NCBI GenBank assembly: GCA_964188305.1
Contig: OZ076886.1
From: Podarcis bocagei
Taxonomy: Eukaryota
Length of the DNA: 64,000 nt
Reading direction: 5' to 3' (one strand)
Shown here: positions 16,726 to 51,000 of the stretch, piece by piece
Layout of the letters: every line of letters begins with the position of its first letter
How positions within the stretch are numbered: the stretch's first letter is position 1
Translations under genes and position numbers: made by a program
Notes under the pieces: generated by a model
The model's input: the letters and a program-made list of their open reading frames with translations, nothing else
Database searches by the model: none
What the model was told of the DNA's origin: nothing

Positions 16726-18892
16726 CTCCTGCTCTGCTCTTCTGGAGTTGGTTTGGTCTCCTCCTTAACTTGAGACATGGGAAAAGAGGCTGCGGCTTCT
16801 GGCGGTGGGGCTATAGGAAAAGGAACAAGGGGTTTTGCATGCAGAGCAAAGTTTCTGCTCTCCCTCATAATGAGAGCTAGAAATCCAAATCACAGCAAAG
16901 TTCCTTAGGGTCTTGCAGATGTCATCCGCTGTCAATTGGCTCAGCTAGCTTTTCATTTGAGCTATACCGAAGAGGAAAACGGGATGCAGATTCCATTCGC
17001 AGCCGACTCCCTAGGTGGCAACAGATGCGATTGCTGTGCAAAATGATTGTGACTGGGGGGGCGGGTTCCTTAACCGGTTAATTGTTGAGGCAACGGTGAA
17101 ACTTTAATAGCCAGGTAGCAAATGAAAAACCTAAAGCAAGCTGGGCGGGGGGGGGGGGGCGGGATCCTGGGTTGTTTAGGAAAAATAGCCAGGTGCCAAT
17201 CTGAGGAGTAGCTTTTAAAAAAAAGTGTCGTGTTGGTTTTTGTTTGCGCCTTTCTTCATGTGCTGCATAATCAGCTTATGGAATTATTGACAAAGAGGTG
17301 TTGTGATGACAGCTGCTATGTATGGTTTTTTGTTTTAAAAAACATATTAAACCAATGGATGGCAAATAGGTCTATTAACGGCTATTTGCTAGAACAGCTG
17401 GGAACAGAACTTCCACATGTAGGAAGCCTCTAATTGCCAGAATAAACAAGAGGGGCTGGATATACTCTGCCACGTAGGTTTCCAAAAAACATCTAACTAG
17501 GCCACTTTGGGTTGCTGCACTATCTGGATCTTGGTGTCTCCAATAGGGGCCTTTTCCAAACAGCCGGTTCATTGAGCATTCATCCTGAATCATTTTTGGG
17601 GGGAAATAGACAGCACTGGCTGCTTCATGAGCCTTCACTCTGGTTTGTTGGTTGGGGAGGTTCTATGGCATTGCACAAAAGCAAGGGTTACCCAGCGTTT
17701 TCCACGGCATTTCTCAAGTTGCTTTCCTTCTCACAAGCCCCCTATCTTCTGGAGAAAGCGGGTTTGTTATGCAGGGGCACTAAATCAGCTTCACATGCAG
17801 AATCCCATCTGGAAACTACGACGGTCTGGAAGCGTCTCGGGGGATGGGGAAGCATGTGGTTGGACTACAACTCGCATCATCCCTGACCATTGGTCATACT
17901 GGCCCGAGGCTGATGGGAATTGGAAGTCCAACAATATCTCGAGGAGTCCAGTATGGAAAGACAATTTTCAAGTTACTGGTGTATGTACCTGTAAAAATGG
18001 AGCATTCTCACAGCATGGGAGAGGATATATTTTGACCACCAGAGGCGGCTAGAGGTTTGAGGTAGAAGTCCTTAAGGCAGGAGGCTTAAGGAGGGACTGC
18101 TGGAATGGTGTGCTGTTTTGGCAGCACCGTGGAGGTGTGAGTCAGGTGTGCCTCTGGGTTTCTTCACGTCTCTGTCCTCTAAAGATAGTGGTTTGTTTCC
18201 TGAGGGGGTGGAACCGCCAGATCTGGATCTGTCGATGTGCTACAGTCAGCAAGCACTTCCAGCCACAAAGTGGATAAGGCCATCTGCGATCTGGGACAGG
18301 AAGGGGCCCAATCACGCGATGTGGGCATGAACTTCCTGTTCTGGGTACAGCACAGGCAGAGTTGGGATTGAGAGGCCCAGGGTTCAGCAGATCTAGAAGC
18401 AGGGAGGGTGGTTCACAGTAGGGGCAGTGGTGACTGGTAAAGTGGGAGCCCAGTAATGGGTGGAGCCACAGTTCATGGCAGTCAGAGCCAACCGATTCAG
18501 TTCTAGTTTTGTCCCAGTCTTCTCCCTCCACACAGCAGAGTTCTGCAAGGGCAGCCTTGGCACTGAGGAGGGGGAAGCTGGCATGCATTGCCACCCGCAC
18601 CCCCCAGGCTGTAGGCAAGAAGGCTGGCAGGTGAGGGCTGGCTGAAGGCAGGCAGAGATTGGTGAGGCAATGCCCCATTGGCTCTGAAGGACCAGCCTCC
18701 ATTGAATATAGGCCCTTTGGTCAAGGGTGGGCAACCTTTCTTCTGTCAAGGACCGCATTCCCTCAGGGGTCATTGGTCACAAACCGAAACAGGGCTGGAA
18801 CCAAAGTGGGCAGGCCTACTCCTTCTCTCTCTCTCTAACACTTCCATAAAGGACATAAGGAGAGCCTGCTGCTCTACCTCTCTTTTAAATCA

Positions 18893-19786
18893 GAACCAGT
18901 GAAGGCGGTGAAGGTCCTGTGTGAGTGTCTGGAGGCGGTTAGAGGATGGATGGCGGCTAACAGATTGAGGTTGAATCCTGACAAGACAGAAGTACTGTTT
19001 TTGGGGGACAGGAGGCGGGCAGGTGTGGAGGATTCCCTGGTCCTGAATGGGGTAACTGTGCCCCTGAAGGACCAGGTGCGCAGCCTGGGAGTCATTTTGG
19101 ACTCACAGCTGTCCATGGAGACACAGGTCAAATCTGTGTCCAGGGCAGCTGTTTACCAGCTCCATCTGGTACGTAGGCTGAGACCCTATCTGCCTGCGGA
19201 CTGTCTCGCCAGAGTGGTGCATGCTCTGGTTATCTCCCGCTTGGACTACTGCAATGCGCTCTACGTGGGGCTACCTTTGAAGGTGACCCGGAAGCTACAA
19301 CTAATCCAGAATGCGGCAGCTAGACTGGTGACTGGGGGCAGCCGCCGAGACCATATAACACCGGTCTTGAAAGACCTACATTGGCTCCCAGTACGTTTCC
19401 GAGCACAATTCAAAGTGTTGGTGCTGACCTTTAAAGCCCTAAACGGCCTCGGCCCAGTATACCTGAAGGAGCATCTCCACCCCCATCATTCTGCCCGGAC
19501 GCTGAGGTCCAGCACCGAGGGCCTTCTGGCGGTTCCCTCATTGCGAGAAGCAAAGCTACAGGGAACCAGGCAGAGGGCCTTCTCAGTAGTGGCGCCCGCC
19601 CTGTGGAACGCCCTTCCAGCAGATGTCAAAGCGATAAACAACTACCTGACATTCAGAAGACATCTTAAGGCAGCCCTGTTCAGGGAAGTTTTTAACGTGT
19701 AACATTTTACTGTATTTTTGGTTTTTATGGAAGCCTCCCAGAGTGGCTGGGGAGGCCCAGCCAGGTGGGCGGGGTATAAATAATAA

Positions 19787-41943: not shown

Positions 41944-43001
41944 GCAAGCCTGCAGGGGTCACTACAGGCAACCTGCCCCAGCCCTCCCATTGGCCAGCTC
42001 TGTTGCGAGGAGCGATGGACAGCGCAGTCACATGATCAAGAATGGGGAGAGTGCGTGCGGTACGGTTGCTGTTGGACAATCACCCATCACAGCTCAGCCT
42101 GCCCCGGATACATGCAATATTTTGGACTTGAAACAAAGCGACCTGATCGCGATGCTGGAGAGGAGAGAGGGCACAGACTTCGCCTACATTCCGGATGGTG
42201 GGGGGGGGGGGGCTGCTGAAATTCTTTGTGGAGCCAAAGTTGCAACATTCCAGTTAGGAACATATAGGCTAAAAACGCCCCCCCCCCCGGGGGGAGCACA
42301 CAGGTTAAGCACTGTAAGCATTGCTTTTATCCTTCCCATTTTGCTCACAGTGGATCAAAGGCACAACAAAAGCTGGCATATGAGCAATCCAAAAGAAAGC
42401 ACAGATGATGGATGCAAATGGTGGTTCACTGGTTGTTTTTATTCTGTTCTGAGCTGACTGACACCCCATCTAGGCCATGTCCTACCCACATACAGAAAAT
42501 CTTTGGCACCTGTATCAGAAAAGAAAGTTTGTAAACAAAGTTGCATAGCCTCAGACAAACACAGATGTCTGCCTGCCGTTTGGGCAGAAGGCAAAGTTGT
42601 TGCTTAGAGCAGGGGGCGTTTGTTGTCCATGGCAGTTGCAGAGACTTGCTCTGTGCATACCAGGGTGGGCAGAGGCTCGTGTCTGCAGCATCAGCTTGCG
42701 GCTTAGGACAAGGATACGGGAGGGAAAGAGGACTCCGATGTTGCCAGCGTTGACAAACTGTCCAGCGTCTCCTGTCAGCAGCTTCATTGTGGAGCAGAGA
42801 GGCAAGCTGATTGAATGGGGGCTGTGCGTATCTTATTTCTGTGGGCCCCACAGAAATAATAATATAACCAGGAGGCCGCTTTCTCCAAGGCTCTAGGCTG
42901 AATTTAGCGTACCTTCCCGTGAGAGGCCCATTCCACCCGTTGCACCTGGTGGCCGTCCCTCTTGTTTCGCACCCAGCGCCCCAGAGATAGGCCAGGGCTC
43001 G

Positions 43002-45451
43002 CTACTGCAGCTGCTTCATCAGGAGGCGGATGAGCTGCTGTCGCTGCAGCCAGTACTGGGGGCCCTGATGCGGAGGCAGCTCAAAGAAGGAGAAGGTGAA
43101 ATTGCGGCTGAAGTTGAGGTTGGTGATGCTGGGCACGGGCGGCAGCTTCACCCCCTGCCACTTGCTCCGGAAGTGCCTGGGCGAGCCTCTGCTCCGGCTT
43201 GCCTTCTGCTTCGCCTTGCCTTGGAGCAGCAGGGTCCTCGGCCGCTGCTCCCCTTCGGCAGCCGGCGCCTTCTCTCCCAGGTGGTCTTGGAAGAAGCTGC
43301 AGGAGCTGGGAGTTCCTGCTGCCGAGAAAGGGACACTGTGCAAGAAGGACACCACAGGCTTGAAAAGGGCATGGAAGGAGGTCTCGGACTGAGAGGGCCC
43401 AGTCCAGGGCGCCATGTCGGGCGTGCCCAAAGGGGCTGCTTTGGCATGGGGGAGGCCTGGCAGCTTCTGGCCTGGTTTCTCTGAGGCAAGAGAAATGGGA
43501 GCAGAGCAGGTGTTAGTGAGGAACGAGGCAGGAGACTCAAGTACTTGGCTCAAGTGTTGCACTGGGCTGGGTGCACAGGGGATTCCTGAGGCAGGGCGAT
43601 GTGGGAAGGGATCTGGCTGATACAAGGATCTGTGCCCCTTTCCTCTGAGGAACACAGGTGCTCCCTGCTCCCTCTGTTCTGGCTTGCATTCCCCGCAAAG
43701 CCCTGATAGGATCTCTGCGCCCTCCACAGAGGCCAGGGACCCAATGGAAGCCCCAACATTAAGCAGCCCTAGAACCTGCTGCATTCCCCTCACAGCAGCC
43801 CAGCCTCCTTCCAGCTACCAGCAAGAGAGCATTAGCCCAGCGCCAGGCTCTCTGCAATCCTGCCAGTGGCAGGTGGGGCAGTGTCAGACACCAGAGCCTC
43901 ACCAAAGACCTTGCCTCCTTTGGGAATCTGGGGAAGAGCCATCCTGTTTTGCCTTGGGATTAAGGGAGTCTTGGGAGCAGTTTTATTCTGGTGCTTGTTT
44001 GCAGCTCCTACCTGGACGTGGGGGGGAAAGAGATATAGGAGGTTAAGTTTTGTAGCCCAATAAAGCAAACAGCAATCTGTGAGAGACGGGTTGTGACTCT
44101 TGGGGTATAACACCTGCACATACTAGAAGAAGAGTTTGGATTTGATATCCCGCTTTATCACTACCCGAAGGAGTCTCCAAGCGGCTCACATTCTCCTTTC
44201 CCTTCCTCCCCCACAACAAACACTCTGTGAGGTGAGTGGGGCTGAGAGGCTTCAGAGAAGTGTGACTGGCCCAAGGTCACCCAGCAGCTGCATGTGGAGG
44301 AGCGGGGAAGCGAACCCGGTTCACCAAATTACGAGTCTACCGCTCTTAACCACTACACCACACTGGCTCTCTATTCAATATGCAGCTATTGTGAGTCTTG
44401 GGCAGGTGTAAACGGGACTATGTGGACCTCAAACTCTCTCTTATTAGTGGGCAACTGTTTTGATGTACAGCAGTGGAGTTTTGTACTGCTGGTCAAAAGT
44501 CTTAGGAGAACACCACGAGCAGAAAGCATGCATTGCCCTGCTGCAGGGAGGAATAATCCACAATCCTGATCATTCTATCTATTCCAGCAACTCTGTAATG
44601 GGACTTCAGTAAAGCTGGAGCATCTCCTACAGCCCTGCAAGTACATCCCAGCCTCAGCTAACACACCCCTTGTTCAGCCTTGTCGATCTTTTCTTCAGCC
44701 CTGAAACCAGTAAACCAGCATGGAGGGAAGTTGCCACCAGGCAGCTTCCTTCTCCAGCACGGGCTCTGTACCAGGGCTAGCCCCAGGACCGTGTGAATTT
44801 CAAAGCCCTAAGGGGATCCCTCGTGTATCCTAATTGCCTAATGACAAGTGTAGCCAAAGTTGCTGGAGTGCAGCGCCCGTCACCTCTGACCATTAAGTCT
44901 GGCTGCCTGGGAGTTGTAAGGCCAACAACACCTGGAAGGCACTGTCTTACTATAAAGGAGGAGTGAACATTTGGCAAGCGGTGGCCTGGAGCCAGGTATC
45001 CACCAGCAAACAGCTGTGCTGTGAAGGCAGGAATATTCATGGATGCTGGTCCTCTTCATCAATGCCACCCTGAATTCTGACCTGCCTGAGTTTAATTCCC
45101 CACCACTGCTGCAGAGTTACATATCTATCTATCCCTGGGCAATGCACCGGTATCTCCACCCTGCCCCACCAATAGGGCTTTCCCTACCTTCTCCAGCCAG
45201 CCTGTGCACTTCCCTCTGGCAGGATCTTCTCTGGTCCTTGCATGGCCCTGGCACCTCCTGAAGCCGGGGGTCACACTCATCCTCATGGCACAGCCAGGGT
45301 GGGTGGTGACACTCGCTGTGGGCAGGGCTGAACCTCGCTGAGCCACCGAAGGGAGCAGGCCTGTTGCTTCCAGGGGTGCCATCTCCTGTGGCTGCTCTGA
45401 GCCAGCCCCTCTCTGCCTGGATTTGGGGACAAAGTGCGGCTGGAACGGCAT
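43002..45451 (-). CDS. Candidate uncharacterised gene between DALRD3 and WDR6; possible 392-aa model, exons 45451-45188, 44011-43910, 43814-43002
   Basis: 813-nt stop-free terminal frame ending GVKLPPVPSITNLNFSRNFTFSFFELPPHQGPQYWLQRQQLIRLLMKQLQ*. Donor AAG|GTAGGG at 45188, strong acceptor at 44011, acceptor with CTAAT branch at 43814, all phase 0. AATAAA at 42443-42438. The second donor (AAG|GTCTTT) is weak. Confidence 0.5.
44125..44370 (-). mobile_element. tRNA-derived squamate SINE (L2-tail type)
   Basis: Head GAGCCAGTGTGGTGTAGTGGTTAAGAGC with B box, and (CTT)n tail. Related copies at about 49344-49470, 34632-34830 and 12446-12570. Confidence 0.8.
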
Positions 45452-46359
45452 TTTTCAGTGGACCGAACTGTAGCATCCCAGGTTTGTTTGTGGCAATGAC
45501 AAGGAAGCAAGGTGGTCCACACAGCGCCTGGAGAGCTTGCTACTCGGCGTCCTTCTGGTACCTACACCACTGGGTGAATCCCACTATCAGTGCAGCTTGG
45601 GACGGCATCGCCCTGTTTTGCAGCAAGCTCAGCTGTTCATCCAGGAGCCAAATAGATGGAAGGCCATTGGGGATCGCCAGTGCGTGACAGCAGCGCCCAC
45701 GTGCTGAACTTGCAGACAAAGGGGCCTTGGTGTGACCTCCCCGTTGCTGCAATCTGGACCATGAAATATGCATGGCGCTGCTGGGGGGGCCAGAAACCCC
45801 AGCCACTCCAGGGCTCAACCGCTGAATTATTGAGCGCAGGACAGGAGCAGCATACTCTGCGCAACCGAGCAAATCCCTCTGAACAGCTGCCACAAGCTGC
45901 AGCAGCCGAAAAGTGAAAAGTCCTGACTCGGAAGAGGAATCTTGATTGGTGGAAATAGAAATTGTGTTAGGGGGGTCAGAGAAAACTCAAAAGCATTTCC
46001 TATTGTAATTGGGACGGACGGACAGAAAGCTAACCATTTCCCTGCAAGTCTGTACCTCCAGGATATTCTCATTCCATCCCAATTCCTGCACCAAACATGG
46101 ATCATATGATTGAACTTCCCACCCCAATTCTACTCCATGTGTTTTGCGTTTTTATCTTGCGTTTTTATGTTGTGAAGCACCCTGAGATCTACGGATGAAG
46201 GGCAGTACGTAGACAACTCTATTTTATTATATATATTTTTTTAAAAAACCACCATCTCTCACCTGGGTAGACATTCTGTGAACATCCCCACTCCTCCACG
46301 ATCCTTTTCTACCAGTGATACAGTCTAAATGGACATTGGATTCTTATCTCATTATACAT

Positions 46360-46630
46360 GACTAAGCCATTTTTCACCTTCTCACCCCTTGCCTTTTCCT
46401 GTAAGACCTATTGCAGTCGTTAAGAGTCGTCAACAGGCTCATCTAAGCTATCTGCCAATCTCCCATTCCCACCACCCTTCTGAGTAATACCCCTCCCCAC
46501 TTTCTCACTATATAGAAGGATCTGGCAACTTCTGTTTCAGTGTATCTGAAGAAGCGTGCATGCACACGAAAGCTCATACCAAGAACTAACTTAGTTGGTC
46601 TTTAAGGTGCTACTGGAAGGAATTTTTTAT
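46360..46630 (+). mobile_element. Penelope-like element pseudo-LTR fragment
   Basis: ...TCTGAAGAAG(C)GTGCATGCACACGAAAGCTCATACC...TTAGTTGGTCTTTAAGGTGCTACTGG, typical of reptile Penelope termini. Confidence 0.7.
46542..46579 (+). ncRNA. Minimal type I hammerhead ribozyme motif
   Basis: GTAT-CTGAAGA-A-helix II (GCGTG CATG CACAC)-GAAA-GC-TC|ATAC. Helix I is GTAT/ATAC; helix III is the palindrome AGCT. Confidence 0.65.
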
Positions 46631-47560
46631 TTAGTCTAAATGGATGTCATTCAGCAGATGCACACAGGAATGTCGCTGCCCATTGAACTGACTAGCCCCT
46701 GACACTCCAGTGAGTTTGTAGCAATTCTGAGCCTGTAGGCAGTGGGACAAGAAACCCTCCTCTGCAATGGGAGGATGGGTCTTTAAGTTCTGTGGGCCCA
46801 GGGCACTGCAAGCACCAGGTGATCAGCTCTTTCTCCAAATCCATGTAAATGGGATTCATCTGTCCATCCTGCAGGCTGGGATTAGGTCTCCTTAAGGAGT
46901 AGGATCACAGCTCAGAGGCAGAGAACGTTCTTTGCACAGAGAAGGTTCGATCCCCGGTATCGCCAGTTAAAATGATCAAATAGGCGGCGCAAGGGGAAAG
47001 ACCCTGGAGAAACCCTGGGGCAGTTGGACAAAGAAGTCTGTCCTGGTATAAAGTAGCTTCCTACGTTTCTCCGCGGTAATCAGAAGAGGAGGCTGAAATC
47101 CAGGACATATATTTGGAAGGAAAAGGCATTTTAAGCCATTTAACCAGCGGAGGCAGAGGGACTGGCACTGAGTGGGCTTGATTTATTACTGCATTTCTCA
47201 TCACAGGCCCTCTGTCAAAATAGGTTGGCGAAGCCCCGGTATGACTGCCCACAAGTCACAAGGCAAAGAAAAGCAGGCAAGCTGTATCGTATCAGGGACA
47301 GTATCTGCGTGGTTATGGCGGAAGCAGTTTCTCCCTGAAGAGAGGGGCAAAGTATTTTTATTTATTTATTGTTATTCCCGTTTTCTGCTGTATTTTCTGC
47401 TGTTTTCTGTTGCATCATTTAAGCGTTTTAAATTTGTTGTTAGCTGCCCTGAGCCTGAACTGGGAAGGGCGGGGTATAAATAAAAAATAATTATGATTAT
47501 TATTTATTATATTTCTTACGGCCCTTGCTGCTTTCGCATGACAGCCCTCTGTGCCCTGGT

Positions 47561-47952
47561 TGGTGTTGGTGCTGACCTTTAAAGCCCCAAACGGCCTCGG
47601 CCCAGTATATCTGAAGGAGCATCTCCACCCCCATCGTTCAGCCCGGACACTGAGGTCCAGTGCTGAGGGCCTTCTGGTGGTTCCCTCATTGCGAGAAGTG
47701 AGGTTACAGGGAACCAGACAGAGGGCCTTCTTGGTAGTGGTGCCCACCGTGTGGAACACCCTCCCTTCACATGTGAAGGAAATAAGCAGCTATCCTATTT
47801 TTAAAAGACATCTGAAGGCAGCCCTGTTCGGGGAAGTTTTTAATATTTAATGCTGTACTGTTTTTAACATTTGATTGGGAGCCGCCCAGAGTGGCTGGGG
47901 AAACTTAGCCAGATGGGCGGGGTATAAATAATAAATTACTATTATTATTATT
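47561..47952 (+). mobile_element. L2 LINE 3' fragment directly behind the WDR6 stop codon
   Basis: Matches 19415-19800 (VLTFKA.NGLGPVYLKEHL) with an (ATT)n tail. Confidence 0.88.
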
Positions 47953-48010
47953 GGTCGCTCAAACTCTTCTGCACCCCAACAGAATAAGGCACTGCACAGC
48001 CCACACTCCT

Positions 48011-51000
48011 TCATACACCATTTTCTGTTTCTGCACCTGGCAAATCTAGGCTGCAGCGGAGGATCTCCAGCCCCTGCCCGCAGATCACGCTGCGGCAGTC
48101 ACGGGCCCCAGCCTCCCAACACTCCAGGCCAGCCACATCGGCCACATGGCAGAATTTGCTGCTGATGAAAGACAGGCTGTCCTCGCGAAGGTGCCAGAGC
48201 GTCATCCGCTGGTCCACCGAAACAGAGAGGAGGAAGTCCGGCTGCAGGAGCCTCACCCCCGTCACGTGAGCTGCGTGGGCACAGAGCCTCGAAGAGTTTC
48301 TGAGAAGGCGGATGCTGGGCCCAGCGATGGCTTCCTGGTCGGTGTCGCTTCCAGCATCCACCTCAACAGCGCTGAGAGAGATGGAGCCGTCATCGCTGCC
48401 ACTGGCCACCAGGAAATGCCCGTCAGCTGCTTGTTGGACGTGGAGGCTGTTCACTCCACAGCTGTGAGCCCGGATGGTCAGGACTGGGGTACCCAGGTCT
48501 GGAAAACACACACAGGCAAAGGAAGCGTACAAGGCTGGGAGGAAGCGCAAAGGGTGGTATACACTTGAAAAATAAGGTATACCTAGGAGGGTCACAAACA
48601 GGGTGGGCAGGTACAGAGGACTCCCTGGTTCTGAACTGTGCCCCTGAAGGACCAGGTGAGTAGCCTGGGAGTCATTTTGGACTCACAGCTGTCCATGGAG
48701 GCACAGGTCAACTCTGTGTCTTGGGCGGCTGTCTAGCTGCTCCATCTGTTACGTCGGCTGAAACCCTATCTGCCTGCAGACTGTCTCACCAGAGTGGTGC
48801 ATGCTCTGGTTATCTCCCGCTTGAATTACTGTAATGTGCTCTACATGGGGCTATCTTTGAAGGTGACCCAGAAATGACAACTAATCCAGAATGCGGGTGC
48901 TGGGACCATATAACACCAGTCCTAAAAGATCTAAATTGGCTCCCAGTACACATTTCTGAGCACAATTCAAAGTGCTGGTGTTGACCTTTAAATCCCTAAA
49001 TGGCCTCAGCCCAGTATACCTGAAGGAGCGTCTCCACCCCCATCGTTCAGCCAGGACACTGAGGTCCAGCACCGAGGGCCTTCTGGTGGTTCCCTCATTG
49101 TGTAAAGTGGAATGCTCTCCCGGCAGATGTCAAAGTGTTAAGCAAATATATAAATTTAAACATCTGAAGGCAGCCCTGGTTCGGGAAGGCTTTAAGATTT
49201 GAATTGTATTTATTTTTGCTTTATTCATTCTTTCATTGGGAGCTGCATCCCCATAGTGGCTGGGCAACCCAATCACATGGGCTGAGTATAGGAAATAGAA
49301 TCATGGTATCACAGAGATGGAAGGGACCACAAGGATCATCTAGAGGGCCAGTGTGGTGTAGTGGTTAAGAGCTGTAGACTTGTAATCTGGTGAACCGGAT
49401 TCGCTTCCCCGCTCCTTAGGGTGGTGATAAAGCGGGATATCAAATCCAAACTCCTCTTCTTCTTCTTCTTCTAGTCCTACCCCCTGCAATGCAGAAATCT
49501 TCGGCCCAACATGGGGCTCAAACCCACAGCCCTGAGATTGAGTCTCATGCTCTACCCCAGGCTTCCTCAACCTCGGCCCTCCAGATGTTTTTGGCCTACA
49601 ACTCCCATGATCCCTAGCTGGCAGGACCAGTGGTCAGGGATTATGGAAACTGTAGTCTCAAAACATCTGGAGGGCCGAGGTTGAGGAAGCCTGCTCTACC
49701 CACTGAGCTGTCCCGGTTATACAATAAAAAACAACAACTTTAAGGGTGCACGAACAGGGCAGTCAACACAACCACCTACCCAGAAGCTTCATTTCTGTGC
49801 CTTCCGCCTTCAAGGCCTCTGCAGCACACTTAAGGGTAGGGGCGAGATCCCAGAATGCAATGCTCCCGTCGGTGGCAGCGCTGCTCAACAAGTGCCTTCT
49901 ATAAAAGAAAGATGAATGGGTAAAATTAGCTTTCTAGGGCCTGATGTGTCAGCAGTAGTAAACTCAGGGGAGGTGCATCTCAAGAACACTGGGGGTGGGG
50001 TGTAGCCACTCCATTCTCACCTTTCTCCATCTGCTGTCTTACATGCCAACGCCTGGACCTTCAGGACGCAGTGCTGATGGTGAAAGGATTCTGCCACAAG
50101 CTGCAGCTTCTGGGCATGCTCAAGCAGCAGGAAGAGGCTATGCAAACATGAGAGCAGTGAAGTCAGTCCAAGGAAAAGAGTCTCCGACTTTAAAGAGGGG
50201 GAAAGGGCCACATCCTTTGTACCAAGCGCTACAGTTTTCTTTCTGTTCATGTTCCCTTCTCTAGTTTGGGGAAAGTGCTGCTCCAGGAAACATAAAAAGG
50301 TAAAGGGACCCCTGACCATTAGGTCCAGTCGTGGCCGACTCTGGGGTTGCGGCGCTCATCTCGCTTTATTGGCCGAGGGAGCCGGCGTACAGCTTCCGGG
50401 TCATGTGGCCAGCATCACTAAGCCACTTCTGGCGAACCAGAGCAGCGCACGGAAACGCCGTTTACCTCCCCGCTGGAGTGGTACCTATTTATCTACTTGC
50501 ACTTTGACGTGCTTTCAAACTGCTAGGTTGACAGGAGCAGGGACTAAGCAACGGGAGCTCACCCCATCGCAGGGATTCAAACTGCCGACCTTCTGATCGG
50601 CAAGTCCTAGGCTCTGTGGTTTAACCCACAGACCCACCCGCATTCCTACCCCAGCAATGCAGGCCCCTAAAAGAGAGAGCCCAACCATCTTCCTTACCGG
50701 ACAGAGCCATCACTGCAAGCAGCGGCTAGGAAGAGCAAGGGACCAGGAAGCTCTGGGTACTCCACACCAGCCAGGACCTCAATAGACATATACCTGGAAC
50801 ACAGAAGTTATCAGTTACCTTCTCTGGGACACACTATCCATACCCAGAGCAGTGAAAAAGTAACACACACACACACACACAAGCTGGAAAATGGCATGTG
50901 TTGCCTACTATGGACTCGGCGCCCAAAGTCCTCCCTATTCTCTCTGTACTAATGTATTCTTAAGCACGAGTACAGCAGAATAGGGAAGGGGGGGAATTCT

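Follow-up and report, generated by a model that had tools for sequence, protein, structure and literature searches.

A three-exon gene downstream of WDR6 in Podarcis bocagei, very likely a member of an unnamed jawed-vertebrate family

In this paper we analysed a window of 64,000 nucleotides from Podarcis bocagei (contig OZ076886.1 of assembly GCA_964188305.1; all positions are those of the window) and in particular a minus-strand frame near the 3' ends of WDR6 and DALRD3, which an earlier sequence-only reading had taken for an orphan gene of squamates or sauropsids. We consider it very likely that this region carries a genuine three-exon gene on the minus strand (45451-45188, 44011-43903 and 43480-43002), spliced into an intact frame for a protein of 283 amino acids, and that the gene belongs to an unnamed single-copy family from the jawed-vertebrate ancestor which lies beside WDR6 and of which no member was detected in mammals, birds, turtles or crocodilians. 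The gene itself is not new, being already public as an uncharacterised RefSeq or GenBank model, the same genus included.

Coding exons and spliced transcripts

The frame from which the analysis started is free of stops for 270 codons (43814-43005, closed by a TAG at 43004-43002) and is the third-longest open frame of the window, after a 1003-codon WDR6 exon and a frame within a repeat. It is open as claimed, but only its last 159 codons, from 43480 onward, belong to exon 3, and its first 111 codons (43814-43481) are part of intron 2. The sequence-only reading had joined the whole frame to two upstream exons through a donor at 43910 (43910/GTCTTT) and an acceptor at 43814, giving 392 amino acids. 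We compared this model with transcripts over 42400-48350, in three runs of Logan contigs from three studies (X1, X3 and X9) and one run of raw RNA-seq reads (X23). A joint at 43480/43903 is present in contigs of all three contig runs and in one raw X23 read, and its CT..AC ends on the plus strand correspond to GT..AG on the minus strand. The joint between exons 1 and 2 is found in X1 and X3 at 44006/45183, which with a cut offset of +5 becomes 44011/45188, so that both introns are GT-AG. No joint in any run uses 43910 or 43814; every run with a junction here uses 43903/43480, and none of the three contig runs has any depth at 43594-43792. The start codon at 45451, exon 1 and the 45188/44011 junction were thus correctly proposed from the sequence and are borne out by the contigs of X1 and X3, whereas the second junction has to be replaced and the 392-residue model exceeds the supported one by about 110 residues.

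The contig runs carry the guessed label 'RNA?', and their contigs are without strand or transcript ends. That they hold cDNA follows from the GT-AG-spliced contigs and the empty intron. A minor joint at 43335/43903 (depth 3, X9) marks an alternative acceptor inside exon 3 that removes motif B, described below, and keeps the frame. It corresponds to the RefSeq isoform X3 of Podarcis raffonei (P0009), which skips the same motif. Downstream of the stop, an AATAAA had been noted at about 560 nt, and we find it at 558 nt. The coordinates of the gene and of its features are collected in Table 1.

Table 1. Features of the gene in the window, with their divergence from the Zootoca locus where the two were compared (UTR, untranslated region; SINE, short interspersed element; pLDDT, predicted local distance difference test score)
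Feature	Position	Strand	Identity to Zootoca	Indels against Zootoca	Description
Exon 1, coding part	45188..45451	-	96.2%	none	residues 1-88; ATG at 45451, A at -3; GTAGGG donor after 45188
Exon 2	43903..44011	-	97.2%	none	109 nt; residues 89-124 and first base of codon 125; contains motif A; CCAG acceptor before 44011; G/GTGAGG donor at 43903
Exon 3, coding part	43002..43480	-	96.4%	12 + 3 nt, both multiples of three	residues 125-283 and stop at 43004-43002; CCTCAG acceptor before 43480
Intron 1	44012..45187	-	89.6%	many	1176 nt skipped by the joint; CT..AC ends on the plus strand; holds a SINE
Intron 2	43481..43902	-			intron-like divergence, frameshifting indels, Zootoca stops; zero contig depth at 43594-43792
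Intron 2, part within the open frame	43481..43814	-	88.8%	1, 13, 1, 35, 12 nt	Zootoca stops in all three frames
3' UTR to AATAAA	42439..43001	-	89.2%	12, 23, 1 nt	AATAAA at 42444-42439; contigs continuous from 43481 to below 42400
5' UTR	upstream of 45451 to at least 45633 (X3), to 46191 in one contig (X1)	-			contig extent
Motif A, RMALPQIP	43945-43922	-			exon 2, residues 111-118; consensus [KR]..LP.I; LP (near-)invariant in 21 sequences
Motif B, DMAPWTGPSQSETSF	43374..43418	-			residues 146-160; P-W invariant, S..SE.SF nearly so, shark to lizard
Basic stretch, GKAKQKASRSRGSPRHFRSKWQGV	43149..43220	-			residues 212-235; Arg/Lys-rich in nearly all members
Motif C, KLPPVPSITNLNFSRNFTFSFFELPPHQ	43065..43148	-			residues 236-263; L249, F251, F255, F257, S258, F259, F260 and L262 invariant in 21 sequences
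C-terminal amphipathic helix	43008..43061	-			about residues 265-282; predicted, pLDDT >90

The same layout is found in the relatives. The Zootoca, Gekko, Varanus and Xenopus models map to three exons each, and in all four the 43903/43480 junction is an exon boundary too. Their middle exon maps over 108 nt, or 36 whole codons, in Gekko, Varanus and Xenopus and amounts to 34 codons in Zootoca, where a greedy mapping split it. The family and the window gene alike have three coding exons, of which the middle one measures about 109 nt and the last is large and starts just before motif B. The 88 residues of exon 1 are kept within squamates, where the ATG and the MPFQPHF start are common to the Zootoca, Pogona and Sphaerodactylus models, and have no alignment outside them; the Xenopus exon 1 has only 9 residues.

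A longer form of the gene, in which the last exon starts at 43814 and the entire 270-codon frame encodes part of a 392-residue protein restricted to squamates or sauropsids, can draw on the frame being open from 43814 in this genome and on the RefSeq isoform X2 of Podarcis raffonei (P0001, 245 aa), which starts in intron 2 and reads through 43481 in the same frame. The transcripts speak against it, with no joint at either of its sites and an interval of zero depth. So does the comparison with Zootoca, since 43814-43481 diverges like an intron, with frameshifting indels and stops. Other squamates align only from 43480 onward (59% query coverage), and homologues exist far outside the sauropsids. 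As the main form of the gene this model is refuted, and we leave it a very small probability.

Several further observations concern the surroundings of the exons. An out-of-frame ATG lies at 45476 on the minus strand, with G at -3, 25 nt before the start; it is kept in Zootoca and Varanus, opens an overlapping frame of 115 codons and may act as a translational damper. The isoform X2 model of Hemicordylus uses its frame. We rejected this frame as the true frame of exon 1 on a ratio of nonsynonymous to synonymous substitution rates (dN/dS) of about 1 or higher. The sequence-only reading had called its frame non-repetitive; this holds for the exons but not for intron 1, where a high-copy SINE with a tRNA-like head (GCCAGTGTGGTGTAGTGGTTAAGAGCGG...) occupies 44125-44371 on the minus strand at a contig depth above 100,000. 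Near 49347 on the plus strand, in a WDR6 intron, there is a second copy that differs by one mismatch, and ARAGORN found no tRNA gene in 43900-48000.

Purifying selection on the annotated frame

The exons are 96-97% identical to Zootoca, compared with 89% for the introns and the UTR. We calculated dN/dS by the Nei-Gojobori method (NG86) for the window, Zootoca, Varanus and Gekko, with Xenopus included for the last 55 codons. Over the whole coding sequence the ratio is 0.13 against Zootoca and 0.36-0.46 in the deeper squamate pairs. When exons 1 and 3 are read in all three frames, the annotated frame is the lowest in every pair (0.11-0.71 overall, with 0.11-0.13 against Zootoca, 0.11 for exon 3 itself, and 0.3-0.7 against Varanus and Gekko), whereas the shifted frames give 0.69-2.2 and are mostly near or above 1. 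The gene is protein-coding and under purifying selection at the codon level.

The C-terminal peptide quoted in the sequence-only reading is present in the translation, and its impression that this end is selected agrees with a dN/dS of 0.20-0.42 for the last 55 codons. It had proposed a codon-level test of selection as a check, and the gene passes it. Its description of the protein as fast-evolving applies in part: outside the motifs the protein changes fairly fast, with a dN/dS of about 0.4 within squamates, but the motif residues are invariant in 21 sequences.

These figures also bear on the idea that the transcript is real and the frame only incidentally open, for instance within the 3' UTR of WDR6 or DALRD3 or in an antisense RNA, with the protein models as artefacts. 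Such a transcript would suit the low-complexity composition, the lack of a domain and of protein-level evidence, and also the 5' end, where no CpG island was found and the upstream ATG just described stands in good context. It would not account for a dN/dS clearly below 1 only in the annotated frame, for exons that are so much more similar to Zootoca than introns and UTR, or for a frame, intron positions and a near-invariant motif that are kept from sharks to lizards. We consider the chance that the gene is non-coding to be negligible.

Orthologues and existing annotation

The 270-aa translation matched 15 squamate proteins at E-values of 1e-42 to 1e-124, all of them named 'uncharacterized' or 'hypothetical', from Podarcis raffonei, Zootoca, Hemicordylus, Anolis (two species), Pogona, Phrynocephalus, Lerista, Varanus, Gekko and Sphaerodactylus. 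The matches cover only the C-terminal 39-60% of the query, with the exception of the Podarcis raffonei X2 isoform (77%). Full-length squamate models begin with MPFQPHF..., as exon 1 does, run on through exon 2 and continue with EKPGQK... at 43480, not 43814. The window protein is 94.8% identical to Zootoca LOC118080870 over the full length, from which it differs by the lack of a 'CLPAC' insert of 3-4 residues and otherwise in nothing of substance, and its exon 3 part is 99.4% identical to Podarcis raffonei LOC128408537. The gene is thus annotated already, with NCBI models for Podarcis raffonei, Zootoca, Anolis, Pogona, Varanus, Hemicordylus and other species.

For a wider view we built a profile from nine squamate proteins and ran it on 1.84 billion cluster representatives (E<=0.001), which gave 45 matches, 21 of them at E<=1e-10. 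Outside squamates the orthologues have E-values of 1e-27 to 1e-8. They come from amphibians, both frogs and a salamander (Pleurodeles, Engystomops, Rhinophrynus, Xenopus tropicalis and Pelobates), the lungfish Protopterus and the coelacanth Latimeria, non-teleost ray-finned fishes (Polyodon and Lepisosteus), teleosts (Astyanax, Sinocyclocheilus, Engraulis, Dallia, Lates, Syngnathus, Lota, Thalassophryne, Anguilla and Pleuronectes) and cartilaginous fishes (Scyliorhinus and Hemitrygon). The unnamed matches have the teleost form of the motif, and one of them (P0026) is near-identical to the paddlefish protein. Word-indexed protein searches, one by broad alignment and one with the C-terminal region alone, added only the shark Cetorhinus and one unnamed Logan fragment (P0061), and no non-squamate amniote.

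We identify the window gene as the lacertid orthologue of LOC128408537 (Podarcis raffonei), LOC118080870 (Zootoca), LOC103277983 (Anolis) and LOC100485975 (Xenopus). It shares its motifs with these and with LOC110079943 (Pogona), LOC123034446 (Varanus), LOC106706539 (Latimeria) and LOC122807752 (Protopterus), and we regard all of them as the same gene. Since the orthologues reach from sharks to lizards, with a shared layout and position in the species checked for these, the gene dates to the jawed-vertebrate ancestor and the label of orphan had to be dropped. The expectation of a gene kept in squamates or sauropsids was too narrow on the one hand, the same C-terminal motif being found in amphibians and in lobe-finned, ray-finned and cartilaginous fishes, and too wide on the other, as among sauropsids only squamates were matched. 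Absence from mammals had been foreseen, and the profile search gave no match in mammals, birds, turtles or crocodilians. This is meaningful for mammals and birds because the cluster representatives also comprise proteins that were predicted from assemblies of public RNA runs. Seen from the protein databases, the pattern is an apparent double loss in amniotes. A co-loss with the parietal eye was considered and rejected: geckos are without a parietal eye and keep the gene.

None of the RefSeq or GenBank models of the gene has a specific name, a domain or a described function. Several fish orthologues have been named automatically as 'formin-like protein 14/20', 'proline-rich receptor-like protein kinase PERK9', 'WAS/WASL-interacting protein family member 3' or 'synapsin-2', and carry the same motifs B and C and the helix (misnamed or fused entries are found at the loci L005 and L006 and in the proteins P0027, P0030, P0031, P0037, P0049, P0051 and P0054). 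These names appear to stem from poly-proline tracts. For FH2, WH2, synapsin ATP-grasp and protein kinase domains, Pfam was blank in the pieces from the window and in the nine squamate members, and the gar and Lates products are without a precomputed Pfam match. Membership in the formins, the WIPF proteins, the synapsins or the PERK kinases was rejected, as the defining domain was not found.

Conserved motifs and predicted disorder

The protein is strongly basic, with an isoelectric point of 11.0 and 39 Lys and Arg residues to 14 Asp and Glu, and it is richest in Pro (12%), Ala, Leu, Gly, Gln and Ser. Conservation was read from an alignment of 21 sequences spanning the jawed vertebrates, and across them it is limited to three motifs, A, B and C. 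Motif A is found at the very N-terminus in teleosts. Motif B, with the consensus [MIV].PW.G.S.S[ED].S[FL], opens exon 3, and in the window it is present and follows motif A as in the family. Motif C has the consensus KLPP.x(3)[TS].LSFSR[SN]F[TS]FSFFELP.HQ; an Arg/Lys-rich stretch comes before it and a helix after it. Its core F[TS]FSFFELP, nine residues long, is near-invariant, and it is at motif C that the most distant profile matches align best. Residues 236-283 of the window protein have the pattern LPP.x(3)[TS].L[SN]F[ST]R[SN]F[TS]FSFFELP with a terminal amphipathic helix.

An AlphaFold2 model of the Zootoca orthologue, built with the 21-sequence alignment, has a mean pLDDT of 54, and only the helix at 268-285 is confident (pLDDT >90). 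In agreement with the sequence-only reading, the protein is thus predicted to be mostly disordered apart from its C-terminal helix. Pfam gave no family at E<=1 for the three pieces of the first model or for the nine squamate members, a profile search of the PDB gave only a chance match to RyR2 (E=3.5), a feature search of the ESM Atlas gave no usable match, and we found no paper on the gene or its family, nor anything relevant in the general literature on gene loss.

Several known short motifs were compared with the alignment and rejected. The RVxF motif of PP1 is excluded by the lack of Val or Ile at the core position, the LxxIxE motif of PP2A-B56 by a Lys or Pro that tetrapods have where Glu is needed, the calcineurin PxIxIT motif by the missing second Ile, and the PCNA-interacting peptide box by wrong spacing. 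A signal peptide or transmembrane segment was likewise rejected, as there is no hydrophobic N-terminus.

Linkage to WDR6

WDR6 lies on the minus strand of the window from about 55700 to its stop at 48011, and the window is collinear with the Zootoca locus. The gene follows directly on the same strand, after a spacer of 2.5 kb. From the same collinearity, the DALRD3 coding sequence ends at about 41965 on the plus strand, so that the gene indeed sits between the 3' ends of WDR6 and DALRD3, as had been stated. The order of WDR6, the gene and a convergent DALRD3 is also found in Zootoca, Gekko and Varanus, in Xenopus tropicalis and in the catshark (Scyliorhinus). In gar and Lates only the WDR6 side is kept, and the gene is followed by an SLC26A-type transporter. 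The same-strand position right after WDR6 is thus common to all seven species checked. Two gene models run on into a neighbour: in the eel (P0049) the gene is joined with WDR6, and in the plaice with the SLC26A gene. Both fusions look like prediction artefacts, yet they reflect the same neighbourhood.

On the other side, the coding end of DALRD3 and the stop of the gene are about 1 kb apart and unstranded contigs span the whole gap, so that the 3' UTRs of the two genes, arranged tail to tail, are likely to overlap. The spacer from the WDR6 stop to the ATG of the gene contains two more high-copy repeats (46380-46777 and 47375-47971), where the depth ranges up to thousands or tens of thousands and joints of the 'opposite strands' kind are recorded at 46469-46607. 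These repeats break the transcript contigs, and the 5' end of the gene and the 3' UTR of WDR6 can therefore not be traced in them. Elsewhere in the window, an open frame of 287 codons at 18839-19699 on the plus strand belongs to a repeat with further matches within the WDR6 introns of Zootoca and is probably a remnant of a transposable element.

The constant position raises the question whether the gene forms a unit with WDR6, in which the two would be co-transcribed or co-regulated and the product would act in the tRNA 2'-O-methylation by WDR6/FTSJ1, for example with its Phe-rich strand on the WDR6 propeller. The tandem arrangement is kept even where the downstream neighbour changes, the eel model joins both genes, and the contigs of one run (X1) cover much of the spacer, so that read-through from WDR6 into the gene is possible. 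On the other hand, no GT-AG joint between WDR6 exons and exon 1 was found in the runs compared, and the spacer has holes of zero depth in two of the three contig runs (46778-47175 in X3 and 46778-46976 in X9). The eel fusion reads through the usual teleost N-terminus (MSRDRLPLIGSS), which is why it looks like an artefact, the profile search gave no mammalian member, and genes of a conserved synteny block may stay a short distance apart with no functional tie between them. We regard such a unit as quite unlikely.

Discussion

The data above show that the gene is transcribed and spliced, and they establish its frame, the purifying selection on it, its orthology and synteny, and the predicted disorder of its product. 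The conserved features suggest how this product might work. As a tentative proposal, which we hold to be possible and no better than doubtful, it would be a strongly basic and intrinsically disordered adaptor, with three short linear motifs through which it acts. A folded partner would dock mainly on motif C, an amphipathic strand of alternating Phe and Ser or Thr, together with the helix. Other partners would be recruited or regulated by motifs A and B, and the Ser-rich motif B is probably phosphorylated. The Arg/Lys stretch before motif C might serve nuclear targeting or contact with nucleic acids.

On inspection, there is some resemblance to adaptors with an LC3-interacting region (LIR) or a motif of two phenylalanines in an acidic tract (FFAT). 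These share the predicted disorder and the conservation of short motifs, F-F-E-L fits the pattern [WFY]xx[LIV], and Ser or Thr residues stand just upstream (S-F-T-F-S). The protein differs from them in having no acidic tract upstream and a Leu where FFAT needs a small residue. This resemblance may serve as a lead and does not amount to membership.

A number of points weigh against our interpretation. The support for the gene comes from transcripts and sequence. The runs with the junctions have guessed labels and their contigs are without strand or ends, so that read-through from WDR6 is possible. The adaptor mechanism is built on sequence features, and no relative in Pfam, the PDB or the Atlas and no paper stands behind it. 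Finally, the missing match in mammals, birds, turtles and crocodilians comes from protein databases and not from a genome search.

One could go further and suppose that the gene has been held beside WDR6 since the ancestor of sharks and bony vertebrates by a joint function, docking the WDR6/FTSJ1 machinery or another partner, and that it was lost independently in mammals and in the lineage of turtles, crocodiles and birds. This scenario seems unlikely to us.

For this genome, our results provide a corrected gene model of 283 instead of 392 amino acids, with the true junction of exons 2 and 3, and remove a supposed orphan. They point to an ancient vertebrate gene with a near-invariant motif of nine residues and a fixed linkage to WDR6, for which we have nevertheless found no name, Pfam family or paper. 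Zebrafish, Xenopus and Anolis keep the gene and could serve as models for studying its function, which would also help to explain its apparent dispensability in mammals and birds.

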